Part shown: positions 6,516 through 42,993 of the stretch, piece after piece | Layout of the letters: every line of letters begins with the position of its first letter | Position numbering within the stretch: position 1 is the first letter of the stretch | Assembly (NCBI RefSeq): GCF_964204645.1 | Contig: NC_134035.1 | Span: 12,804,451 to 12,868,450 of the forward strand | Length of the DNA stretch: 64,000 nucleotides | Direction of reading: 5' to 3' | Origin: Tubulanus polymorphus | Lineage: Eukaryota > Animalia > Nemertea | Made by a program: the position numbers and the translations under genes | Notes under the pieces: generated by a model | The model's input: the letters and a program-made list of their open reading frames with translations, nothing else | Told to the model about the DNA's origin: nothing | The model's database searches: none

Positions 6516-7524
6516 CGTGATTCGGTCCCTTCACAAACATTCAACCCATTAGTCAACAGGGTTCAGATAATACTACACTAAACTAAACAAGACTTCGAGG
6601 TCACTGGGGAAACGTTTTCAAAAACCAGATGATGATAAATACATGAGATTCTCGGATTAATAAATCACGAACCCGCTCCAAAAGTTTTTGGTGGAAATTT
6701 GATGACCCTAGAATATTGAAAATATATTGAAACTAATCGTAGAGTCGATATTAATAGACACCGGAATCAGTGGAACTGTCACCAGTTTGAGACGTAAACA
6801 CATTAATCAAATCAACTCGTTTACTATGAAACATTTAACGCGCAATGTTTTTTCTCAGAATCATCTTTCACACAAAGTATTCATACATAATAAGCTCATC
6901 GCGTGTTTATCTAATAAAGAGCCATGACTAGTTTTCACATCAAACTGTAGAGGGCGTGCCGATACAACCTACTTCAACGACTTATATCAATTTCGGACGT
7001 ATTAAATTACTTAGCGGCGCCATCTACTGTCCAAATGAGACATTAAAATATTCCACTCGCCTGATCACGCGTTTTGAAGCTTGATCAGAACCGTGATCAA
7101 AACTCAACGCGGGCCCAGGTGATCGAATGTCGGTTAAAGTTAACCGGTGAATAACTGACACGGTGACAATTAGAATCAGTATTCGTTCTGATCAGTTAAA
7201 AATCATCGGTCCATTTCTCAGGTTTTGACTCTTTTCAAGAGTCGAATTCTAACCGGTAACCGTTGATCCAGTTCCAGCGTTCAACTGATCCCTGATGTTC
7301 GAGTTCAGGCAACGAACCCCGATGAGTCAATAGAATGAAAACACAAACTCACTCACTCACTCACTCACTCTTCACTCACTCTAATAAATATATCTACCCA
7401 AAATATTCAGGCCGTCAAAAGCAACCGAGTTAAATTAAATACTAATTTCATTATTGAATGACCATAATGACTGCGACCATCTCGTTCTCTATAATTACTA
7501 TAAGTATCCTATACGTATAAATTT

Positions 7525-33000: not shown

Positions 33001-34615
33001 CAGTTGCTATCGTGTTAGACATTCTATCAGCACACTTTCTAAAACTGATCAGCCAGACTTCACGTTATGGAGACGGTTCCACGCTACAGATTGTCTGAAG
33101 GGGTCGGGTTGTAAGCGGCACTAGGATTGAGAATTGGAAGAGCGATGTCTGTTGTCAGAGTATCTCTGGTAGGATGGAATGAACTGTAGACTAATTATAG
33201 GCCTGATGACACTAATCAGTAGAGATCAAGTATACACAAACAGTAATCAGCAAACTGAAGATTAAATCACGTTTCTCTGTCCATCTCTCGGCTATCACCA
33301 GCCGCAACATCGCTTACCAGGGACAGAATCAGTTAAGCCTTCTAGGTACCAGCGGATAAGAGATACGCCGGAACCTCACTTACCAGGGACGGAATCAACC
33401 AGAATCGGAGACTGTTCCTTACAAAACGTACAACCTCACTTACCAGGGACGGAATCAGAGACTGTTCCGTACAAGAGATGGAACCTCACTTCCCAGGGAC
33501 AGATTGAACTTTTATATTACTCATATATAGGCCTAAGTACATGTAGGCTGCATGACGAGACCTATTTTTATGATATTTTTTCTACTAGCAACAGAATGAC
33601 AATGATTAAAAGTGTGGGTGAAATAACCATGAATTGAAACAGCCTATATTTTGATTGGTTTTCAATTTAAAATTCAAAATGGAACCAGTGTCATTAAAGA
33701 ACAAGTTTTCTTTATCCAGTCAACCAGAAACTGCTTATTTAGGGCGGCCTCTACTATACTAATGTCTATTTATTAATTGATGAGACCTGTTTTTCTTGGA
33801 TATTTTGCTTACTTTTTGGGGTACATACCTCATTTATGTCTTAACAGAATGCCAAAAATCGCGGACAACAACTGAATATCCGATATATTTCCAGTTCTGT
33901 ACCAATTAGATGGATTGGCAAAAATACTCCTTAAGTCCAGTTGAATGAGAGAGAAAATCCTCCATTTTGTCAAATTTCTTGAATTTTTACATTGTCACCA
34001 TGCCTACGAAATGAAGTTATTTTTCTTGTGGGGTCTCAACAACTAAATCAGGGTGGCGTAGGCATGGTAACAATGTTCAAATCCAAGAAATTTCACAAAA
34101 TGGAGGATTTTCTCTCTCATTCAACTGGACTTAAGGAGTCTTTTTGCCAATCCATCTAATTGGTACAGAACTGGAAATATATCGGATATTCAGTTGTTGT
34201 CCGCGATTTTTGGCATTCTGTTAAGACATAAATGAGGTATGTACCCCAAAAAGTAAGCAAAATATCCAAGAAAAACAGGTCTCATCAATTAATAAATAGA
34301 CATTAGGACGCTGTCATTGAACAAATTGAATTGAAATGAACTGGTTAATAATAATCAAATTCCGCACATTTCTTCTTCACAGGTGTCTAAATATACATAG
34401 GCTATGTATGTATGAATTCAACAGAGATTAACATGAAACAGAATCGATAAAAACGTGATAATCAACAGGTAGAAATAATAGATGCCCGGGAACGTATCCT
34501 TTCTTCCCTCCTGGCTGGCTGCTGATGGAGAGACTGGCTGAGAGATCACAGCTTGTGAAACTAAGTTGGATTAGAATGTATTTTTATTGTCGTCTTACCC
34601 CATGAACCAGTCCAT
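7525..34615 (-). CDS. MOB2: MOB kinase activator 2 (NDR/Hippo-pathway co-activator), 5 coding exons, 283 aa
   Basis: Exons 34615-34599 (MDWFM-G), 13471-13302 (KGRKK...[14 protein letters not shown]), 12298-12202 ([20 protein letters not shown]...), 10352-10228 ([24 protein letters not shown]...DESVFPTKF), 7967-7525 (GNEFP...HIYYAHF...GHLN...IMDDL plus Ser/Thr-rich tail). All GT-AG with matching phases, 852 nt in total. Motifs match vertebrate MOB2 (MDWLMG, NEWLA, APQYVD, FPTKYG) from memory. Confidence 0.95.
8365..8436 (+). mobile_element. Degenerate tRNA-like SINE head or tRNA pseudogene
   Basis: T-arm/B-box ccgggttcgatccc and D-loop-like tatggtt; acceptor and anticodon stems do not pair well. 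Confidence 0.45.
8841..8970. repeat. GA-rich polypurine simple repeat (similar tracts at 10995-11075 and 24283-24700)
   Basis: Directly visible. Confidence 0.9.
10528..10656. mobile_element. Short palindromic MITE (ggggccagttgctcaaaag TIR); second copy at about 53614-53740
   Basis: About 20-bp near-perfect TIRs. Confidence 0.75.
11508..12190. repeat. G-rich degenerate minisatellite (~13-17 bp, tttgaggggtaga)
   Basis: Dozens of gaggggta(g/t)attt units, ending just before a MOB2 splice donor. Confidence 0.9.
12486..13198 (+). mobile_element. TIR-type element carrying an internal 56-bp tandem array (~10 units), copy 1
   Basis: Unit aatcagtaatcaacagtaagaccctcagtaacatctttcatatttctgttcaaatt. Shares the leader ggctgccaatctct and trailer tgtatgcatcaaataaatcaaatcagt with copy 2. 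Confidence 0.8.
14505..14575 (+). repeat. 14-bp G-rich tandem repeat (ggggtggggcatca) x5, G-quadruplex-prone
   Basis: Directly visible. Confidence 0.85.
14786..15648 (+). mobile_element. Same element with 56-bp tandem array (~13 units), copy 2
   Basis: ggctgccaa...ttaggcagct termini; same unit and flanks as copy 1. Confidence 0.8.
15766..15803 (-). CDS. MOB2: Weak candidate alternative first coding exon of MOB2 ([13 protein letters not shown])
   Basis: 38-nt open stretch ending AT|GTAAGT in phase 2. The ATG lies in a small palindrome (catggacatataatctgtccatg), so this may be coincidental. Confidence 0.3.
20025..20365. repeat. 20/40-bp minisatellite (gaactgtggagctgagtactgaagagtggagctggatcct)
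   Basis: About five near-perfect 40-mers preceded by degenerate 20-mers; resembles the MITE-A terminus. Confidence 0.9.
20752..20815. repeat. 12-bp tandem repeat (gcctggaaccac) x5
   Basis: Directly visible. Confidence 0.9.
21090..21308. repeat. 20-bp tandem repeat (tccgctgagtaccccctgag) x~11
   Basis: Directly visible; explains three overlapping spurious ORFs. Confidence 0.95.
21692..21853. repeat. Degenerate 21/63-bp tandem repeat (gaataccacgtcccag core)
   Basis: Repeated EYHVP peptide in the ORF track. Confidence 0.8.
22303..22379 (-). CDS. MOB2: Candidate alternative first coding exon of MOB2 ([26 protein letters not shown])
   Basis: ATG in CACAAATGG context, 77-nt open exon ending TG|GTGAGT in phase 2; CpG-richer region with two CCAAT boxes about 300 bp upstream. 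Confidence 0.65.
22655..22725. promoter_or_regulatory. Internal promoter-like cluster (two CCAAT boxes, TATAAATA) upstream of the MOB2 alternative exon at 22379
   Basis: gaccaatagc, aaccaatcgt and ctataaataagg within 70 bp. Confidence 0.4.
23909..24001. repeat. (TA)n microsatellite, about 46 units
   Basis: Directly visible. Confidence 0.98.
24947..25071. mobile_element. Short palindromic MITE, family B (ttaagacc/ggtcttaa core)
   Basis: Related copies at about 1852-1990, 13536-13795, 30098-30210, 31578-31720, 36109-36245 and 60305-60420. Confidence 0.7.
26060..26425. repeat. ~70-bp tandem repeat x5; related single copy at about 62180-62290
   Basis: Unit atatcctaaaatagtcatcttcaggaatactgtattccttgagctagtgtagtttattcaacgtttcca. 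Confidence 0.85.
27121..27431 (-). repeat. 51-bp tandem array x6 of tRNA-like A box/B box units
   Basis: Minus-strand unit aacgtggcagagtctcacgaagccatcaggtttgaatccctatgaggcagg, related to the arms of the 2756-2876 hairpin. Confidence 0.9.
28088..29525. repeat. 69-bp minisatellite, about 21 highly similar units
   Basis: Unit tatagtttgagtacaccgcaccagactgactgtaaccatctcgcataccggtgtatatacggtata(c/a)cc; source of the 346-aa and 238-aa repeat ORFs. Confidence 0.97.
30410..30462 (-). CDS. MOB2: Candidate alternative first coding exon of MOB2 ([18 protein letters not shown])
   Basis: ATG-initiated 53-nt open exon ending AG|GTAGGT in phase 2, which joins in frame to the shared exon at 13471. Confidence 0.6.
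33759..34306. repeat. Long foldback inverted repeat: 250-bp arms, 48-bp spacer
   Basis: 33759-34008 is the reverse complement of 34057-34306 with only about 6 mismatches by eye. Confidence 0.95.
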
Positions 34616-34837: not shown

Positions 34838-37138
34838 TTCCTGTATTTGACAGCTGTCAATAGGGCGGCTGTCAACTACTGCTTGGCTCACGCATTAAGC
34901 TTTTCTTTTATATGTGTAATTGTGCTTATTAAAAAAGAATGTGAATCTAATTTCGTTTTGTTTTATGTAGCTTACATTATGCTTCTGTGAAATAAACTGC
35001 AATTTCAAATGTTTTGTCGAATATGACATGCCATATTGTCCAAGGGTACCAGCTCTTAACCCTTTAAGGTCACTCAGTTAGTTCAGGAACAACCTCAGGA
35101 TTCAGTTCCACAGTTGTGAGTTAAGTTAAAGCATTGAAAATGAACTCATCTTAACTCTAACTTACAACTGTGGAACTGGGCCCCGTAGTCAGTGTTAGGT
35201 AAATCAGTGCCTAGTGACAAGTGGGCCCTCACATTGTGCAGGCCAAACATCAAAGTCTGTGGTCCAGTCATAAACCGTCCAGTATAGGGTTAGTCTCGGG
35301 AAACTAACATCCGAGATCCTAACGACATAAAGCAAGATAGGACTGGCTGGAAATCGGTATCCAGGACTGGCTAGACCAAATAATAGTGAACAACCAAAAT
35401 GAAATTCATTGTTTTCCGACTTCAACTTTTATTCAATCAATCGTACATTTATCACATTTGAGAAAGAAATTATAAAGTATAAGTAAACCACATGTATATA
35501 ACAGTTTACATAAATAATTCACAGTCTGAGGCCCTGATGTTGCTCGAAAATAACAGGTGATTAAATCATCAACCTCAGGCCAAGTTTAAAAAAATTATTC
35601 TTAGATAAAGCGCTTAACCAGCAGTTGACTGCAAAACCAATTTCTGAGCAACACTGGGGCCTTTTTAAATAATAGATAGAGTATACATTATAGGGAGCTT
35701 GTAGAATACATAAGTAAAATTATTTAGAAGCAAAATATATTTGATTTTTAAGCAAAGAATTAAAAGAAATGAAATACTTATTGCCTTTTATGAAATGTAT
35801 ACAGCACATGTGAGTAGTTTTTGATCGATTTTCTTAAAAGATCTTAAAAATCTTAAAACAAATGAACAACATCAAAATGAAAGAATGATACATTATCATT
35901 AACACACATATCTAGTGTTTGATCACTGGTACCCGGCTCCAAAATGGAAAATAAACTCTTTTCATTCAAATGAATGTGGATCCAGGATTTCACCAGTAGC
36001 TAAATAGTTGGTTAAAGCTAACATAACTGAAATAGTGACTATTGTAACTCACTGTATAGTTTTTATGTTATCTGATGGTTAGTAACTGATAAGACCAGAA
36101 ACGTCATTGGGGTGCAGTTGTGACTTGGTTCAAAATTGGTCTTGAATCTTGAAGACTAATCCGAAGTTGTTTGATTGGTTATGGAACCGAAATGATCTAG
36201 GACTGGTCTTACTTTACAAGCCATGTAACTATGCAACTGGCCCCTGAACTTTTTTTTCTACTGTTACACTAAAAACAGAAATATCTGAGATCATGAAATT
36301 AATACAATTATTATTGTTATTATTATGTATATCATCGAACAATGCCCTGTGACTAAAATATAACGTTATCACTTTCAAAAACACACTGACCAAAACCTGA
36401 CAGGAATGTTTCCGAGATACGACAATAATACTGTTGTATTTTAGACTTTATTGATACTAAAACTAATTGTGAAATGACAGTCGATTGATTGACTATTTTT
36501 TTTTTTATAAAACATTTTCCTGTTTTTCGTCTTACTATAAATCTACTTAATGTTTATAAGAACATGTAAACATGTTAATGTAAACATAAGAACATGAATT
36601 CATTAAAACCAGTCACATTGAACATCACTTCAACCAAACACCATATTTTGTTCCTTGCTTTATGATTTTTACAATGCCCTGAGTTGATAACGAACCCTCG
36701 ACCCGGTTCCCCAGTCCTAAGAGTTAAATTTGACTCTTTGAGTTAAAACTATGAAAATTAACATGTTTAAACTCAAAAGTTAACGTTAACTCACAACTGT
36801 GGAACCAGGTCCAGTTACAAAAAAAGTTGTAAACTCTGCCTTACTTGTCAACAGTCAACTGAGTAAAAACCGCTCTCAAGTCAGAGAATTTTACTGAAAG
36901 ATTGTTTTTGAAGAGGCTATTTTTACCCCAGTGGATCCAGTTCCGCAGTTCTAAGTTGATTGAGAGGAAACTGATCGAGAATGAGTTAACTCACGACTGT
37001 GGACAGAACTGGTTCCTGATTCTCTGATTCCGTGAAATAGTCCAACGTTACTGAATAAGACAAGAGTCCACCGTATTTGATAAATAAATATACAGAGGTA
37101 AAATGAATTCATGTTCTTACATACACATCTCATATACA

Positions 37139-37171
37139 CTAAAGATGACTAGTTTTACATTTAGAGTGAAG
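37139..37171 (-). other. IDH1: Putative stop-codon readthrough extension of IDH1 encoding LHSKCKTSHL* (cryptic PTS1)
   Basis: After TGA (37174-37172) the frame reads CTT CAC TCT AAA TGT AAA ACT AGT CAT CTT TAG. SHL fits the PTS1 consensus [SAC][KRH][LM]. Confidence 0.65.
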
Positions 37172-40100
37172 TCAACTCGATTGAACTTTCTTCTTCAAAT
37201 TCTCAGCGAGTTTATCCATAAATTCATTCGTCAATAGATAATCACTTCTTTGGACCCTGAAATTGATCATGAATAGAAGATGAGATTACAGTGAGATAGA
37301 TTGGTTATCATTGCGGTGCTTACAGATCAGGGAATCCATAATTCCTGATACTTCCCCGACCCTTGAACAAAAATTCCCTGATTAAATTGTAAGATATTCT
37401 CAGTGAGGGCTGTTTGTTATCAAGAGGTTCCTTGTGCCACTCATCACCAGCAAGAACAAGACACCTAAAGTTCAAATTCCCTGATTGAATTATAAGATAT
37501 CCTAAATGAGGCTGTTTCTTATCAAGAGGTTCCTTGTGTCACTCGTCACCAGCAAGAACAACAACACAACAAAAATTCAAATTCACTGATTTTTCCCTGA
37601 TTTACATTAATAAGAATCAGAATTCCCTAATAATTCCAGCAGAGAAAAATAAATCCGGAATTCGGTGATCTGTAAAAACCGTGTATCATGTTTTTCATTG
37701 TAGAACTTACTTCGCCATTCCTTTGATGCAAATAGCTAAATCTTTCGTCATGAAACCGGCTTCGATTGTTTCCACGCAAACCTTTTCTAGATTTCGAGCG
37801 AATTCAGCGAGTTTTTCGTTTGCGTCGAGTTTCGCTCGGTGTTCGAGACCTCGAGTCCACGCGAATATAGACGCTATTAAATAAATACAAAAAAATACAG
37901 ATGAGGATGGGCGAGGACAGGGTGGCGCCACTTTAATGTGACAAGCTTTTTTCCCTAACTATTCCCTGACATGCACATAGTTTTCCCTGACTTGATCTGC
38001 TAAGAATCCAATCAATTAACGCAGTAAAATATGTCAGAAACTGTCTAGCAATCTCAACATCAATTTCCCTGACTTTTAGCATTTTTTTTACAAAATTCCC
38101 TGAGTATTTCCCGACTTCTTACAGAAAAGTAAATAATCGCCCAACTTTTCCCTGATTTTCAGGTAAGTGGCCACCTTGTCTAATCAAAGAAATAACCCAC
38201 AGTTAGAAAGTGTTAAGTTTTGACTTATTTCCATGAACCATTTCAAAAACTGTTTATTATCAAATATACGCTTTGATATTGTGGGTTTTTCTAAAATTGA
38301 ATTAGACTTGTCTATAGAAACCAAGATCTAAATCGAGCACACATGTTCACAGAAGACTACGTACCTATAGGATTAGTAGATGTATCTCCACCTTTCTGAT
38401 GAACTCTATAATGACGCGTGACAGTACCGTGAGCTGCCTCCGCTTCTACTGTCTTACCATCGGGACAAATCAGTACGCTGGTCATCATTCCTAGAGATCC
38501 ATAACCTATCAAATACAACCAAATTCTATCATTCGTCAGACTGACAACGTATTAACCCTTTCAGTGCCGACTTATTAATACCCTATAGTGCTGGAGAAAA
38601 TTTGAAAATTAAAAAAAATTCCACCCTAGTGTGTTGAACAATGGAAATACCACTATAGTGCGTCTACACCGTGGTGCGGTGTATCGTTAGTTACTAGTAT
38701 TTCACTATGTGTGACACTTGCTGCCATTTTTCAATAGAGATAATTACAAATTAGTAATTACATCAATACACCGCAGTGCGGTGTACTAGCAAAATCCATT
38801 ACCGATTTATACACCGCATTGCGATGTAGATGCACTGAAAGGGTTAATGTACCGGTTCTGGTATCCCCTTTCTCTCAGATCTACAGTGGCAGTATCCTTG
38901 TTTCCAGATCTACAGTTTAGAGTCTCTTAGAATTATCAGCAGTTCTTCTACCAATTTCAAAATACTCGTATTGTTTTATCGTACTAGAAACCAAGAATTA
39001 GCAAGGGTTTCAATTGGTCTCTATCAATATCGGAATTCTTTTCTGGTGCGTTTGTTTTCAGCCAGAATACGCTCTTCTACCTATTGCGGAATACTTAAAA
39101 AGCGGCCGGTTGAGAATTTCGGAATTCTCTTCTGGCGCTTTTCGGAATACTTGAGAAGCAGCCGAGTTAGTAATCGAGAATTGCCATTCCTAAACCGGAA
39201 TAAGTTCAATCAAAAGCTGTTTTCCCAAAAATCGTCAGCACCATTATGCCACAAATAGACTGTATTTTCATGACTGCATTGACATTGATCTCGTGATAAT
39301 TAATTATTACCTTGAGCGATACAATCGGATTGTACGTCTCCGTCGTAATTCTTACACGCCCAAACGAATCCACCCTCGGCTTTCATCGCGTACGCCACCA
39401 TATCGTCGATCAATCGGTGCTCGTACCAGATATTCTTAGCTTCGAACTTCGATTTATATTCCCTGAAAAAGTATCAGAATTGAAGAGGAACCTGTTCATA
39501 CAGAGGGCGCTGCCACTTCCGTCTATTTACAAATCTTTTGGGCAGGGTTTCATAGAGGTGGAAGAAAGATAGTCCCTGGGAACATTTTGAAATTTGTCAG
39601 TTATAAACATGGTTTCTCATCATTACTATGGTGGTTGTCACCCAGATTGAGGATTTACCCCCAGGGATAACTTTGATACTCAGTCTATCAAACCGGGCCC
39701 TGAAGTTTTGCACGTGATTACACATAATTCCCTGTGAATGAGTAATTTCTAGGTTTACAATTCATTCATTTTTCGTTGAATCACGTATTAATAAAGAAAC
39801 ACACGGTCAATAAATAGCATCATCCGAATTGAGTTTTCCAAGTTTTTGGTCAATGGCCATATTTTGCTCGATAAATCGACTTCTAGACAATGGAATTCAA
39901 TTCACATTCCATCGCAATCTTTCTTAGATTTGTGTTCAAAACAGGGCCGAGTATCGATTTAAGATAAACTGAATTAATGAAGACATTAAATCGATTTAGG
40001 AGTTAAACCTTTTTGCGAAACTGGGCCCCAGCCCTAAGTGATGTTTAGATTTGAGAGCATCTAAATTTAGAGAACTCTTCTGGGTCATTTTTTCTAATAT

Positions 40101-42993
40101 ACGACACTAAATGATATTTACTTCTCGTAAATTTCCTGGAAAATGTCCTTGAATCGGCCGTCGTATTTTTTCAGGATTGTATTCTTCGTGCTCAGATAAA
40201 GCGGCCATTGTTTATCCAACGCGTACGTGAACGAACTGTGAGCGAAATCGGTGATCGACTGAAATAGAACAAGCAGGAATTATCGGACAGTTTACGGTAG
40301 CGGTCAACGATGATCTATTTTTCAGAGTAGTTACCTTATCGGTGTTGTACATCGCCATGGCGATACCGGCGCCGTCGAAATCGAATACCGTATGATGAAT
40401 CTGTTCCCCTCCGTCTTTCGGGGTCCATTTTATTTCTAATTTTCCAGCTCCGGGCACCAGAAAATCAGTGGCTCGATACTGAAACCAGCAAGACAAATGA
40501 ATTAATATTACAACGGCTTACAGATCCATGACTGGTAGACTGATGGTCATCTCAATATTCAGAGTTAGATAAGTAAAACCCAAAGTTGATGATTCAACAA
40601 TTTATTTTCGAAGTTTTGACTGAAAACTTTAAAGAAATGAAACTTGGTTTTTGTCTCTCTGAAGATGAAGTGCAGTCCAAACTTCACGTAGAGAACCTGA
40701 TAAGAGTTAAAATCAGTTCATTTTCAATGTTTCAAACATTAAGAAGTGAAACTTTAGCCAAGAATAATAGAACTAGTTTGATCTTTCTATATCTTATTCC
40801 TAAAAAGGAAACCGATAGTTAAAATCAGTTCATTTTCAATGTTTCAATAAAGAGTCAAACTTCAGCCGAGAACTAAATAACTAGTTTGATCAATCTGTTT
40901 CGATACGAACCTGATCTCCGAATGCGTGTCTGCCGATGACGATACTCTTCTTCCAGCCGGGGACGAGACGTGGAATGTTCTCGCAGATGATCGCTTCGCG
41001 GAACACGGTTCCACCGAGGATGTTACGGATTGTTCCATTCGGCGATTTCCACATCTTTTTCAAACCGAATTCTGAATAAAACGAATCCGCAAATGGAAAT
41101 GAAATTTTGTTCTCGGTTTCTCTATACAAATATCCTTTGATTATAAAATGGAGTGGTTTTTATCGAGAAAGACAGGTTTCTCTATTGATGATGATGTGTT
41201 TGTACTGGTTCTCATAGACAAGAGACTGTCTCACTGAATTGAGGAACAACCCTCGAGTTAAAACTAAGTGAAACTTTACGAGGACTTTGACATTTCAACT
41301 TAAATACTATGAGCCATTTCCAAAATGAATTCATTATCTTATTGTGGATTTCTAAGTATATTCATCTTTTGTGATCCGTACACAGTATAATAAATCGCGT
41401 TAGAACAATTTCATATTCAAGATATGCATTGTTTCAAGGGAAGGGAAAGGCACAATTACAATGATCATGGAAACCATAATAAGCACAGAAATAACTGTCA
41501 AATACTTGAAATTGTCCGAGACAGACTATCACATGACCTAAGAGCCGTCCTCGTTCAATGTATCGGTACTTATCAAAACTGTGAAATGTTAATAAAATCA
41601 AGGACGCAATTTAGTGATACAAGGTCAATTAAGAGTATGAATCAATAATCAGTTCATATCGTAGCCTAGTTCCACAGTTCAAAGCAAAGTCCAAAATATG
41701 AACCGGTTAAATTCTCCTCAAAATAGGTGAGAATTGGAGAGAATTGGAGAACAACCCCTGAAGAATTTATATTCCAATCATATTGCTGAACATTGAACAA
41801 ACCACTGAGAGTAATACTGTTTAAACTCAATTCTATGAGCTATTTTGAAAACAGTCTTGAAAATGGCTCATAAAATTAAATTGAAGCATCGGTACTCTCA
41901 TTGTTTTTTTTTTGACATGGTTTATGCCTTTCAAACTTATTCTCTGAGATATTGTGGATGACTGAAATCAGGGAATGAATGAATTTACCTTCAACTCTTT
42001 TCTCGTCGGGTGTTATTGTAGCACATTTGATACCGACATTGTATTTCTTGATAGCATTAGCGCAATCAATTGTAACTGAAAACCAGAATAGAATTGAATA
42101 GAAATCATTAAAACATCGTTTGGTGTGCAGGGTTCGAACCAGTTTTAATAAAGAATTCAAGCTTAGCATTTCAAAGGGTTAAATTCAAATTATCATTGAT
42201 TTTAAAACTGAAGGAAAAACTTTAGGTTTAAACGATTTTAAGTTAAACCGTGGTTTCAGTTTTATAGAAACGTTGAACTCCTGAATGGATTAAAGATAAA
42301 CTGAACTGAATTAATGAAGAAATTGAATTGATTTTAAAGAGTTCAAGTAAAACATTACCCACGGCTAATACAAATATGAATTCTGTTAACAGAATTATTG
42401 CAATTTGTGATTAATTCAATGAAGATTTTTCTGCAATCCTTCAATAGTGTAAAATGGATTTAAGCCAACCTTTTGAGACCTCTGAGGAATTTACAACTAA
42501 AACTGACTGAGCTAGGCCAGGCCCGACGTCCCGTCAAGCAAAGTTTAAATAGACAATACAGGTACTTAAAGCAAGTAGGATTACGACATAATATTGAATA
42601 AGTCATTAACAGAGAAAGTGGAGCAGGCCCGAACAGGCCAGTATTGCAGTTAGTACATACTCTGATCATCTGTAGCATCACGGCTTTGAATACTGAGATC
42701 AAATTCATGAATATTCAAATCTACGAATGGAAAAATCAACTTCTCTTTGATCTCTTCCCAAATCACTCTGAAAACATGAAAACATTTGAGAATAATATAT
42801 TTAATTGAATTTGACATGAACCAGGAAGTATTTTGACAGTAGCTCTTACCGGGTCATTTCATCTCCCTTTATCTCGACAACATCTCCTCCTGAAATTATC
42901 AAACACTTTTATTCCTCTTCTAAATATATATGTGAACATGTTGTGAAAGAATCCTCACTTTAAAACCCATTATTTACCTGAGATTTTAGACAT
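37172..42993 (-). CDS. IDH1: Isocitrate dehydrogenase [NADP], cytosolic type, 11 coding exons, 410 aa
   Basis: Exons 42993-42978, 42889-42850, 42767-42661, 42075-41989, 41071-40911, 40478-40335, 40258-40122, 39462-39311, 38505-38365, 37873-37711, 37256-37172 (1233 nt, all GT-AG, phases consistent). Motifs: [76 protein letters not shown]. Confidence 0.97.
37918..38178. mobile_element. MITE with CAGGGTGGC termini and internal ttccctga sub-repeats
   Basis: cagggtggcgccactt ... aagtggccaccttg; related ttccctga-rich remnants at about 37328-37680. Confidence 0.6.
38552..38847 (+). mobile_element. piggyBac-like non-autonomous element (TTAA target duplication, CCCTTTCAGTG TIR)
   Basis: ttaaccctttcagtgc ... 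gcactgaaagggttaa; a second copy lies in opposite orientation at 58730-59000. Confidence 0.85.

Follow-up and report, generated by a model that had tools for sequence, protein, structure and literature searches.

The NADP-dependent isocitrate dehydrogenases of vertebrates and fungi enter the peroxisome by means of a constitutive C-terminal type-1 targeting signal, PTS1 (-AKL in human IDH1 and -GKL in U. maydis Idp1; likewise yeast Idp3). Peroxisomes need their own NADPH, e.g. for the breakdown of unsaturated fatty acids, and their membrane is not freely permeable to NADPH. Enzyme, organelle and the role in NADPH supply would be the same at the locus described here; however, the vertebrate and fungal signal stands ahead of the stop codon and is thus present on every molecule, whereas here it stands behind the stop. 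A hidden signal has been described for the cytosolic NADP-dependent enzyme IDP2 of pre-duplication yeast, where a translational 'error' uncovers a cryptic PTS1 in the 3'UTR (Yanagida et al. 2015, PMC4526572): this error is a +1 frameshift, whereas we propose in-frame suppression of the stop codon. The gene also resembles human LDHB and MDH1 in encoding a central redox dehydrogenase of the cytosol with a leaky UGA-CU stop and a hidden PTS1, and the dual location from one mRNA would be a further likeness. The two human cases differ in that they concern other enzymes, have the A and G of the longer consensus, and are backed by experimental proof including GFP localisation. Readthrough is quoted as 1.6% for LDHB and 3-4% for MDH1 (Stiebler 2014, PMC4207609; Schueren et al. 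2014 as reviewed in PMC4973966).

Work in Ustilago and HeLa cells has demonstrated that UGA CU suffices for readthrough, the first two bases after UGA being the main determinant in the two systems, and that readthrough in HeLa cells rises further when the third base past the stop is A (Stiebler et al. 2014, PMC4207609). The extended consensus UGA CUA G enhances readthrough and lies outside the core requirement (PMC4207609; Schueren & Thoms 2016, PMC4973966). As a filter against chance matches, Stiebler et al. asked whether stop context and extension PTS1 are both conserved in orthologues (PMC4207609). The same study predicted, without experimental proof, a readthrough PTS1 for the Idh of Drosophila melanogaster, Apis mellifera, Tribolium castaneum and Aplysia californica (PMC4207609, Fig. 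S3, Table S2); this is the similar report on Drosophila Idh to which the original prediction referred. A ribosome-profiling paper on Drosophila names a single extension with a PTS1, that of CG1969, and leaves Idh unmentioned. Our gene belongs to the same family as these predicted insect and Aplysia cases and shares with them the UGA followed by CU, the short in-frame extension and the terminal PTS1. The tripeptide of the Drosophila protein is SHL as well, in the form N10-SHL as compared to N7-SHL here. The Drosophila tail, which is more acidic than ours, has a PTS1 Predictor score of +2.0, and the predictor would thus be expected to class our tail as targeted too. In contrast, all four published predictions have TGA CTA where we find TGA CTT, and the linker sequences are unrelated.

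The gene lies on the minus strand of the window, i.e. the whole stretch of 64,000 nucleotides of Tubulanus polymorphus DNA that was analysed. Exon-by-exon reading gave an IDH1-type cytosolic NADP-dependent isocitrate dehydrogenase gene of 11 exons, which is listed here in the order of translation:

42978-42993, minus strand: exon 1, coding part; ATG at 42993-42991, encoding MSKIS, plus base 1 of the codon that follows; GT donor after 42978
42850-42889, minus strand: exon 2; AG acceptor and GT donor by direct reading, outside the coverage of the RNA contigs
42661-42767, minus strand: exon 3; splice sites by direct reading, without RNA confirmation
41989-42075, minus strand: exon 4; splice sites by direct reading, without RNA confirmation
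40911-41071, minus strand: exon 5; RNA contig pieces with the joint 40478/40911; acceptor read; Pfam Iso_dh profile positions 86-135
40335-40478, minus strand: exon 6; RNA joints 40478/40911 and 40258/40335 in X1 and X2
40121-40258, minus strand: exon 7; RNA joints 40258/40335 and 39461/40121
39309-39461, minus strand: exon 8; RNA joints; Pfam Iso_dh at 4.6e-10
38365-38503, minus strand: exon 9; RNA joints 38503/39309 and 37873/38365; Pfam Iso_dh
37711-37873, minus strand: exon 10, the penultimate exon; RNA joints; aligned to human IDH1 structures, residues 332-383
37175-37256, minus strand: exon 11, the last exon, coding part; tcag acceptor before 37256; product end ...KKKVQSS
37169-37174, minus strand: stop and context TGA CTT, with TGA at 37174-37172; UGA CU core readthrough motif
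37142-37171, minus strand: putative readthrough extension LHSKCKTSHL, 10 codons, by in-frame translation
37139-37141, minus strand: second stop, TAG; end of the putative readthrough product
36430-37138, minus strand: remaining 3'UTR of about 700 nt; AATAAA at 36452-36447; far end approximate

The lengths of the normal product (410 amino acids; exon lengths total 1,230 nt) and of the putative readthrough product (421 amino acids) were obtained by coordinate arithmetic and not from a spliced protein model. All searches with IDH1 were run exon by exon. Four exons match the Pfam family PF00180 (Iso_dh) in a colinear manner; two of them exceed the cut-off and two fall short of it, as is to be expected of single exons. 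In a search of PDB sequences, the penultimate exon matched residues 332-383 of human IDH1 at 1e-20. The N-terminus is short, begins five residues ahead of the conserved core without a mitochondrial presequence, and in this resembles cytosolic IDH1. A search of the nemertean's own genome with exon 8 led to just two loci, the IDH1 locus itself and, on contig C8, a 73% identical copy with an IDH2-like C-terminal region, the candidate paralogue of mitochondrial type. By its sequence, the gene is the cytosolic NADP-dependent isocitrate dehydrogenase, the orthologue of IDH1.

Translation of 37136-37270 on the minus strand yields ...KKKVQSS, TGA CTT, the ten sense codons LHSKCKTSHL and TAG, exactly as the original prediction has it, and the same end is found in the contigs X1 and X3. 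The last three residues, SHL, agree with the PTS1 tripeptide [SAC][KRH][LM]; lysines are present at positions -5 and -7, and acidic residues are absent from the extension. Direct reading of the +1 and +2 frames past the stop gave no canonical PTS1. The context reads UGA CUU C, so that the earlier reading as UGA-CUU rather than the classical UGA-CUA(G) holds: the core CU is present, and the A at +6 and the G at +7 of UGA CUA G are absent. In the spliced RNA contigs of the runs X1 and X2, position 37711 is joined to 37256, and the sequence then runs on without further splicing to 37032 and 37021 or beyond; the mature mRNA thus contains the extension in one piece with the coding sequence. Over 37032-37255, the X1 contig is identical to the window, and RNA contigs over 37032-37255 and 36496-36972 have a similar depth. 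The genomic-type contig X3, which represents a different haplotype, has five differences, none of them within 37139-37256. Since X1 matches and X3 differs only outside this interval, at least two additional data sets confirm TGA and extension as real sequence. The polymorphism in X3 (four SNPs and one indel in the 107 nt past TAG, none in the 36-nt extension) is not a significant sign of constraint, as about 1.7 changes would be expected in the extension at the rate of the flanking UTR.

How often such an arrangement arises by accident was estimated from all 7,908 stop codons of the window, counted in all frames and on both strands. In 15 of them (0.19%), the frame past the stop runs on to a terminal [SAC][KRH][LM], and 125 (1.6%) have the context TGA-CT. 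The two properties coincide at a single site of the window, the stop of IDH1, and their joint chance is about 3e-5 per stop. Judged by these frequencies, the arrangement of stop codon and PTS1 in IDH1 is not due to chance.

The same arrangement was sought in orthologues, with the penultimate exon 10 of IDH1 as the query. The 50%-representative search returned mostly exon-sized fragments and was used as a source of loci only; contig L007 ends ahead of its last exon and was left out of the comparison. In 10 of the 14 other animal-type IDH1 3' ends that were fetched, a UGA-C stop is followed by an extension with a terminal PTS1, as the original prediction would have it. At the window rate of 0.0019, the binomial probability of 10 positive lineages in 14 is about 6e-25. 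The positive extensions end in AKL, SKL, ARL or CRL, and the codon after TGA is CTA in seven to eight of them, CTG in one and CGG in one:

L005: TGA CTA, LGHMAKL
L091: TGA CTA, LGHTAKL
L093: TGA CTA, LGQRAKL
L087: TGA CTA, LENNARL
L101: TGA CTA, LLNTSIAKL
L094 (the bryozoan Bugula neritina): TGA CTA, LNVAISSKL
L010: TGA CTA, extension ending ...IIPSKL; also -AKL ahead of TGA
L011: TGA CTA, LARL
L006: TGA CTG, extension ending ...ATNSKL
L090: TGA CGG, RCRL
Lamellibrachia: TAA, then LQP and a stop; feature absent
L103: TAA GGA, GPFN; feature absent

The extensions of the three related species L005, L091 and L093 can be aligned free of indels, as had been anticipated, and the terminal GCA AAA CTN is kept via synonymous change, whereas the residues preceding TGA and the UTR past the second stop vary and contain indels. 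The ten-residue linker of our gene could be aligned with that of no other lineage. The matches of a metagenome scan were mostly bacterial isocitrate dehydrogenases and were taken as a negative control: among 66 bacterial-type intronless ORFs, none had TGA-CT or a PTS1 past the stop. The IDH2-like paralogue from the same genome, which served as a second control, has the stop TAA TTC, and its next frame ends in ...PSI.

At both acyl-CoA oxidase loci of this genome, candidate last exons end in -SKL, and the N-domain of PEX14 was found above the Pfam cut-off. The search for PEX3 gave no Pfam match in this genome, which is uninformative for a long profile that is split over exons. Taken together, the candidate -SKL ends and PEX14 indicate that this animal makes use of the PTS1 system.

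The best explanation for these observations is that readthrough of UGA gives an SHL-tagged, peroxisomal IDH1 alongside the cytosolic form, and we put the probability of this reading at roughly 0.78. Most ribosomes would halt at UGA and release the 410-residue cytosolic enzyme ending in ...KKKVQSS. As the stop has the leaky UGA-CU context, we infer partial readthrough: a small fraction of the ribosomes would insert an amino acid at UGA, presumably Trp, Arg or Cys as in other systems, and would then translate the ten codons for LHSKCKTSHL. The new C-terminus -SHL would act as a PTS1, and PEX5 would import the longer form into peroxisomes, within which it could make NADPH. One mRNA would thus serve both compartments, with the ratio set by the leak rate. 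Since readthrough in HeLa cells is raised by A as the third base past the stop and CUU is found here, the leak may be lower than in the orthologues that have CTA.

The low leak that may follow from CUU can be taken further. It is conceivable, if improbable, that the locus is a relic: readthrough targeting would be ancestral, the context would have weakened to UGA CUU until the leak became negligible, and frame and SHL would survive only for want of time to decay. The missing stimulatory A and G fit this idea, as does the RNA downstream of the stop, in which no stabilising fold beyond that of shuffled sequences was detected (z = 0.06). Moreover, four of the 14 lineages have lost the arrangement, and a search of proteins clustered at 90%, with the penultimate exon as the query, returned no relative above 87% identity by which constraint within the lineage could be gauged. 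However, where the feature is lost it has decayed in several respects together, as in Lamellibrachia (TAA, LQP, stop) and L103 (TAA GGA, GPFN), whereas here the UGA, the C and U that follow it, a ten-codon open frame in an AT-rich UTR, a canonical tripeptide and the basic residues upstream of it are all intact, a combination of the order of 3e-5 per stop by chance. In addition, it is the retained first two bases after UGA that mainly set readthrough in the two systems studied (PMC4207609).

Much less probable is that alternative splicing or an alternative last exon joins the enzyme to the SHL frame. Some fungal glycolytic enzymes reach a cryptic PTS1 by alternative splicing (Freitag 2012, as related by a citing paper), and rare isoforms are dropped by assembled contigs. 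Yet among the joints listed, the RNA contigs of two studies have a single last exon that is continuous across both stops, and the 36 nt between the stops are too short for an intron. The sole AG in the extension (in ACT AGT) lacks a pyrimidine tract, and its use would result in ...GMA-N-HL with the loss of the last 27 residues of the enzyme. The original prediction had likewise seen no alternative acceptor reaching SHL, and neither the sequence nor these joints offer a plausible splice route. Finally, splicing would leave the conservation of TGA followed by C in ten orthologues unexpected. The idea that UGA is a selenocysteine codon, with which an open frame past UGA would also agree, or that TGA is a sequencing or assembly error in front of a constitutive PTS1, is scarcely credible, given that 35800-37400 contains no SECIS element or other near-threshold Rfam match even at E up to 10, that TGA is identical in the X1 RNA contig and in the X3 genomic contig of a different haplotype, that the stop is also TGA in the ten orthologues, and that, to our knowledge, IDH is not among the known selenoprotein families.

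Readthrough of IDH1 as proposed here would be a well-supported new example of the UGA-CU readthrough-PTS1 genes and not a new mechanism, the idea having been published in 2014. The window adds an example with the non-consensus context UGA CUU. The original prediction erred in scope in stating that this lineage had moved the PTS1 behind the stop: the arrangement is widespread in invertebrate animals and had already been predicted for insects and a mollusc, and for this reason we regard it as inherited rather than as a local invention. The published prediction for four species is extended by our panel of orthologues to a bryozoan and nine further lineages, and losses and constitutive variants are present as well. 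We know of no animal IDH for which readthrough has been demonstrated experimentally.

It is tempting to go one step further, to a reading that we consider possible, if somewhat short of probable from the comparison of gene ends: the layout of a stop followed by a PTS1 may be a recoding site of great age that has been kept widely among animals. Conservation would be limited to UGA, C(U) and the terminal tripeptide, the linker of 1 to 13 residues would drift freely, and lineages would switch among a hidden PTS1, a constitutive tail and no signal; CUU would then be a leak turned down but not off. With the window included, 11 of the 15 lineages counted have the hidden PTS1. The absence of the feature in four of the 14 other lineages implies that it can be lost. 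If this reading is true, IDH would have one of the most ancient functional readthrough sites conserved in animals and would provide a natural series of 'leak settings'. An address tag behind a leaky stop would allow a single gene to feed two compartments at a fixed ratio, and IDH1 is a good natural series for asking how the stop context sets the split between cytosol and peroxisome. As for the other two states, some lineages have no signal, and others have a conserved constitutive tail, either -QAQL or -AKL.

The IDH1-type gene for cytosolic NADP-isocitrate dehydrogenase can be read on the minus strand as a complete enzyme sequence in 11 coding exons, with open frames between 37.1 and 43.0 kb. 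The exons were searched one at a time. Four of them matched Pfam Iso_dh in colinear order, the penultimate exon aligned with residues 332-383 of human IDH1 structures, and the first coding exon (MSKIS, followed by 14 further residues) gives the short N-terminus of the cytosolic type, without a presequence. Reading the reverse complement of 37136-37270 confirmed to the base the 3' end given in the original prediction:

37174-37172, minus strand: first stop codon, TGA
between both stops, minus strand: ten-codon extension, CTT CAC TCT AAA TGT AAA ACT AGT CAT CTT
37141-37139, minus strand: second stop codon, TAG

Translation past the first stop would yield X-LHSKCKTSHL, whose last three residues fit the C-terminal peroxisomal targeting signal (PTS1, consensus [SAC][KRH][LM]); by coordinate arithmetic, the normal and readthrough products have 410 and 421 amino acids, respectively. 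Contigs of X1 and X2, two small public runs of the same organism from different studies that were both found to be RNA, skip the introns 37257-37710, 37874-38364, 38504-39308, 39462-40120, 40259-40334 and 40479-40910, all with GT..AG ends on the strand of the gene. From 37256 onward these contigs have no further joint and reach at least 37032 and 37021; therefore, the mature mRNA includes the two stop codons together with the ten-codon extension that separates them. Downstream of the stops, another RNA contig covers 36496-36972 and an AATAAA lies at 36452-36447, which points to a 3'UTR some 700 nt long.

A readthrough-dependent hidden PTS1 is predicted for this IDH1, and the prediction is supported by comparison with other lineages. 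Since a protein search found no relative above 87% identity in the penultimate exon on record, the last exons of other lineages were read from DNA fetched around exon-sized fragments and metagenome matches. A TGA-C stop followed by an extension with a terminal PTS1 was present in 10 of 14 other animal-type IDH1 lineages and absent in L095, L103, L008 and L102.

IDH1 ends of other lineages (locus; residues before the stop; stop context; extension)
L005; ...QSAK; TGA CTA; LGHMAKL
L091/L092; ...QKAD; TGA CTA; LGHTAKL
L093; ...KQEE; TGA CTA; LGQRAKL
L087-L089; ...MGSS; TGA CTA; LENNARL
L101; ...MGSS; TGA CTA; LLNTSIAKL
L094 (Bugula neritina); ...KMAN; TGA CTA; LNVAISSKL
L010; ...LAKL; TGA CTA; LPRGDGSNSDIIPSKL
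L011; ...KLNQ; TGA CTA; LARL
L006; ...KLAA; TGA CTG; LTGNQATNSKL
L090; ...KLAK; TGA CGG; RCRL
L095:7105 (annelid Lamellibrachia satsuma, GCA_022478865.1); TAA CTG CAA CCA TAG; LQP, no hidden PTS1
L103; TAA GGA; no hidden-PTS1 layout
L008 (4823) and L102 (~7225-7350); constitutive ...QAQL in both; TAA or TAG; no readthrough layout

The layout is widespread and has evidently been inherited; the idea that the nemertean lineage itself had moved the PTS1 behind the stop fails. Among the 7,908 stop codons of the window (all frames, both strands), 0.19% precede an in-frame stretch that terminates with [SAC][KRH][LM] and 1.6% read TGA-CT; only the stop at 37174 combines the two. At the post-stop PTS1 rate measured in the window, the binomial probability of 10 in 14 is about 6e-25. 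A control set taken from a metagenome scan comprised 67 full-length IDH ORFs without introns; 26 end with TGA, and the single one with both TGA-CT and a post-stop PTS1 is the animal-type L011, leaving 0 of 66 bacterial-type genes. The only other NADP-IDH locus in the 268-Mb genome (contig C8, 73% identity in one exon) has an IDH2-like C-terminal region ending ...SLHK TAA TTC; the following frame ends ...PSI, and there is no hidden PTS1 layout. The related sequences L005, L091 and L093 give a gap-free alignment over the extension, with a synonymous difference in the last Leu codon; a 3-nt indel lies in the residues just ahead of TGA, and indels fragment the UTR past the second stop. This pattern is the signature of a putatively translated, constrained tail. 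The Lamellibrachia gene shows what loss of the predicted signal looks like. The conserved -QAQL end that the unrelated contigs L008 and L102 have in common may act as a weak, non-canonical PTS1, which would make it a third solution reached in evolution.

Two loci deserve separate mention. The animal-type IDH1 at L010:845 (metagenome contig Ga0247645_1011362) has a double signal, with constitutive -AKL immediately ahead of TGA CTA and -SKL as another PTS1 closing the 16-residue predicted readthrough extension. L090 lies on an 82-kb ERZ25068762 contig, where an intron-containing IDH1 with a GC-rich extension (TGA CGG TGT CGG CTC TAG) accompanies intronless genes of bacterial appearance (5'-3' exonuclease, ribose-5-P isomerase, GH20); the contig may be chimeric or may come from an unusual eukaryote.

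The gene falls in a class already described for the same family. NADP-IDH with TGACTA and a PTS1 extension was reported in four species (Stiebler et al. 2014, PMC4207609, Fig. S3, Table S2), which is the Drosophila report to which the original prediction refers: The extensions end N10-SHL in Drosophila melanogaster (PTS1 score +2.0), SKY in Apis mellifera, ARL in Tribolium castaneum and SKL in Aplysia californica. Whereas those genes read TGACTA, the present gene has TGA CTT, with a PTS1 extension in both cases. UGA followed by CU suffices for readthrough in Ustilago and HeLa cells; the first two bases weigh most, and A as the third stimulates further (Stiebler et al. 2014). A 2016 review restates NADP-IDH readthrough as a prediction, and we found no experimental follow-up for animal IDH in the literature; a Drosophila ribosome-profiling paper lists one PTS1-bearing extension, CG1969, and leaves Idh unmentioned. 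In yeast, the hidden PTS1 of pre-duplication IDP2 is reached via a +1 frameshift.

The context UGA CUU C retains the CU core without the A and G that follow it in the extended consensus; 7 of the 10 positive orthologues have these two bases at least in part. The linker LHSKCKT has no kinship to that of any other lineage; it is basic, which should favour PEX5 binding. As to the import pathway, the genome encodes a PEX14 N-domain above the Pfam cut-off, and candidate terminal exons at both acyl-CoA oxidase loci end in -SKL.

Other explanations of the arrangement fare poorly. Splicing to SHL would need an intron within 36 nt, which is too short, and use of the sole internal AG would remove the last 27 enzyme residues and yield -NHL. 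A sequence error at TGA is unlikely, as TGA and extension are the same in an RNA contig of run X1 and a genomic-type contig of run X3, which represents another haplotype and shows five differences, all within the intron or past TAG. Selenocysteine recoding is made unlikely by the absence of SECIS in 35800-37400, where no other near-threshold Rfam family was found either (E up to 10). Folding of the 121-nt stretch that begins at the stop is no more stable than that of shuffled sequences (z = 0.06); any leak would depend on the short stop context alone.

Several repeats lie in and around the gene. The intron between exons 8 and 9 holds a very high-copy repeat (38552-38847), where summed contig depth reaches 40,000-200,000 in each of the four runs, compared with about 30-190 in adjacent unique sequence; many contigs over it extend into unrelated flanks. 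In the last intron, a short element in two tandem copies (37323-37538; frame ...(N/K)KQP...) recurs on other contigs (L004, L096), where it lies within introns of an ACOX gene and the IDH2-like gene; it probably belongs to a family of SINE or MITE type. Another repeat has copies at 36786-36990 (3'UTR) and 40704-40845 (intron after exon 5), and both RNA and DNA contigs switch from one copy to the other, which probably accounts for the 3'UTR contig breaks at ~36972-37032. Finally, an inverted repeat whose arms match perfectly over at least 133 bp (33777-33909, plus; 34156-34288, minus; arms about 250 bp apart) sits between IDH1 and the neighbouring gene. The two strands give identical ORF translations of 37 and 32 amino acids, and the structure resembles transposon ends.
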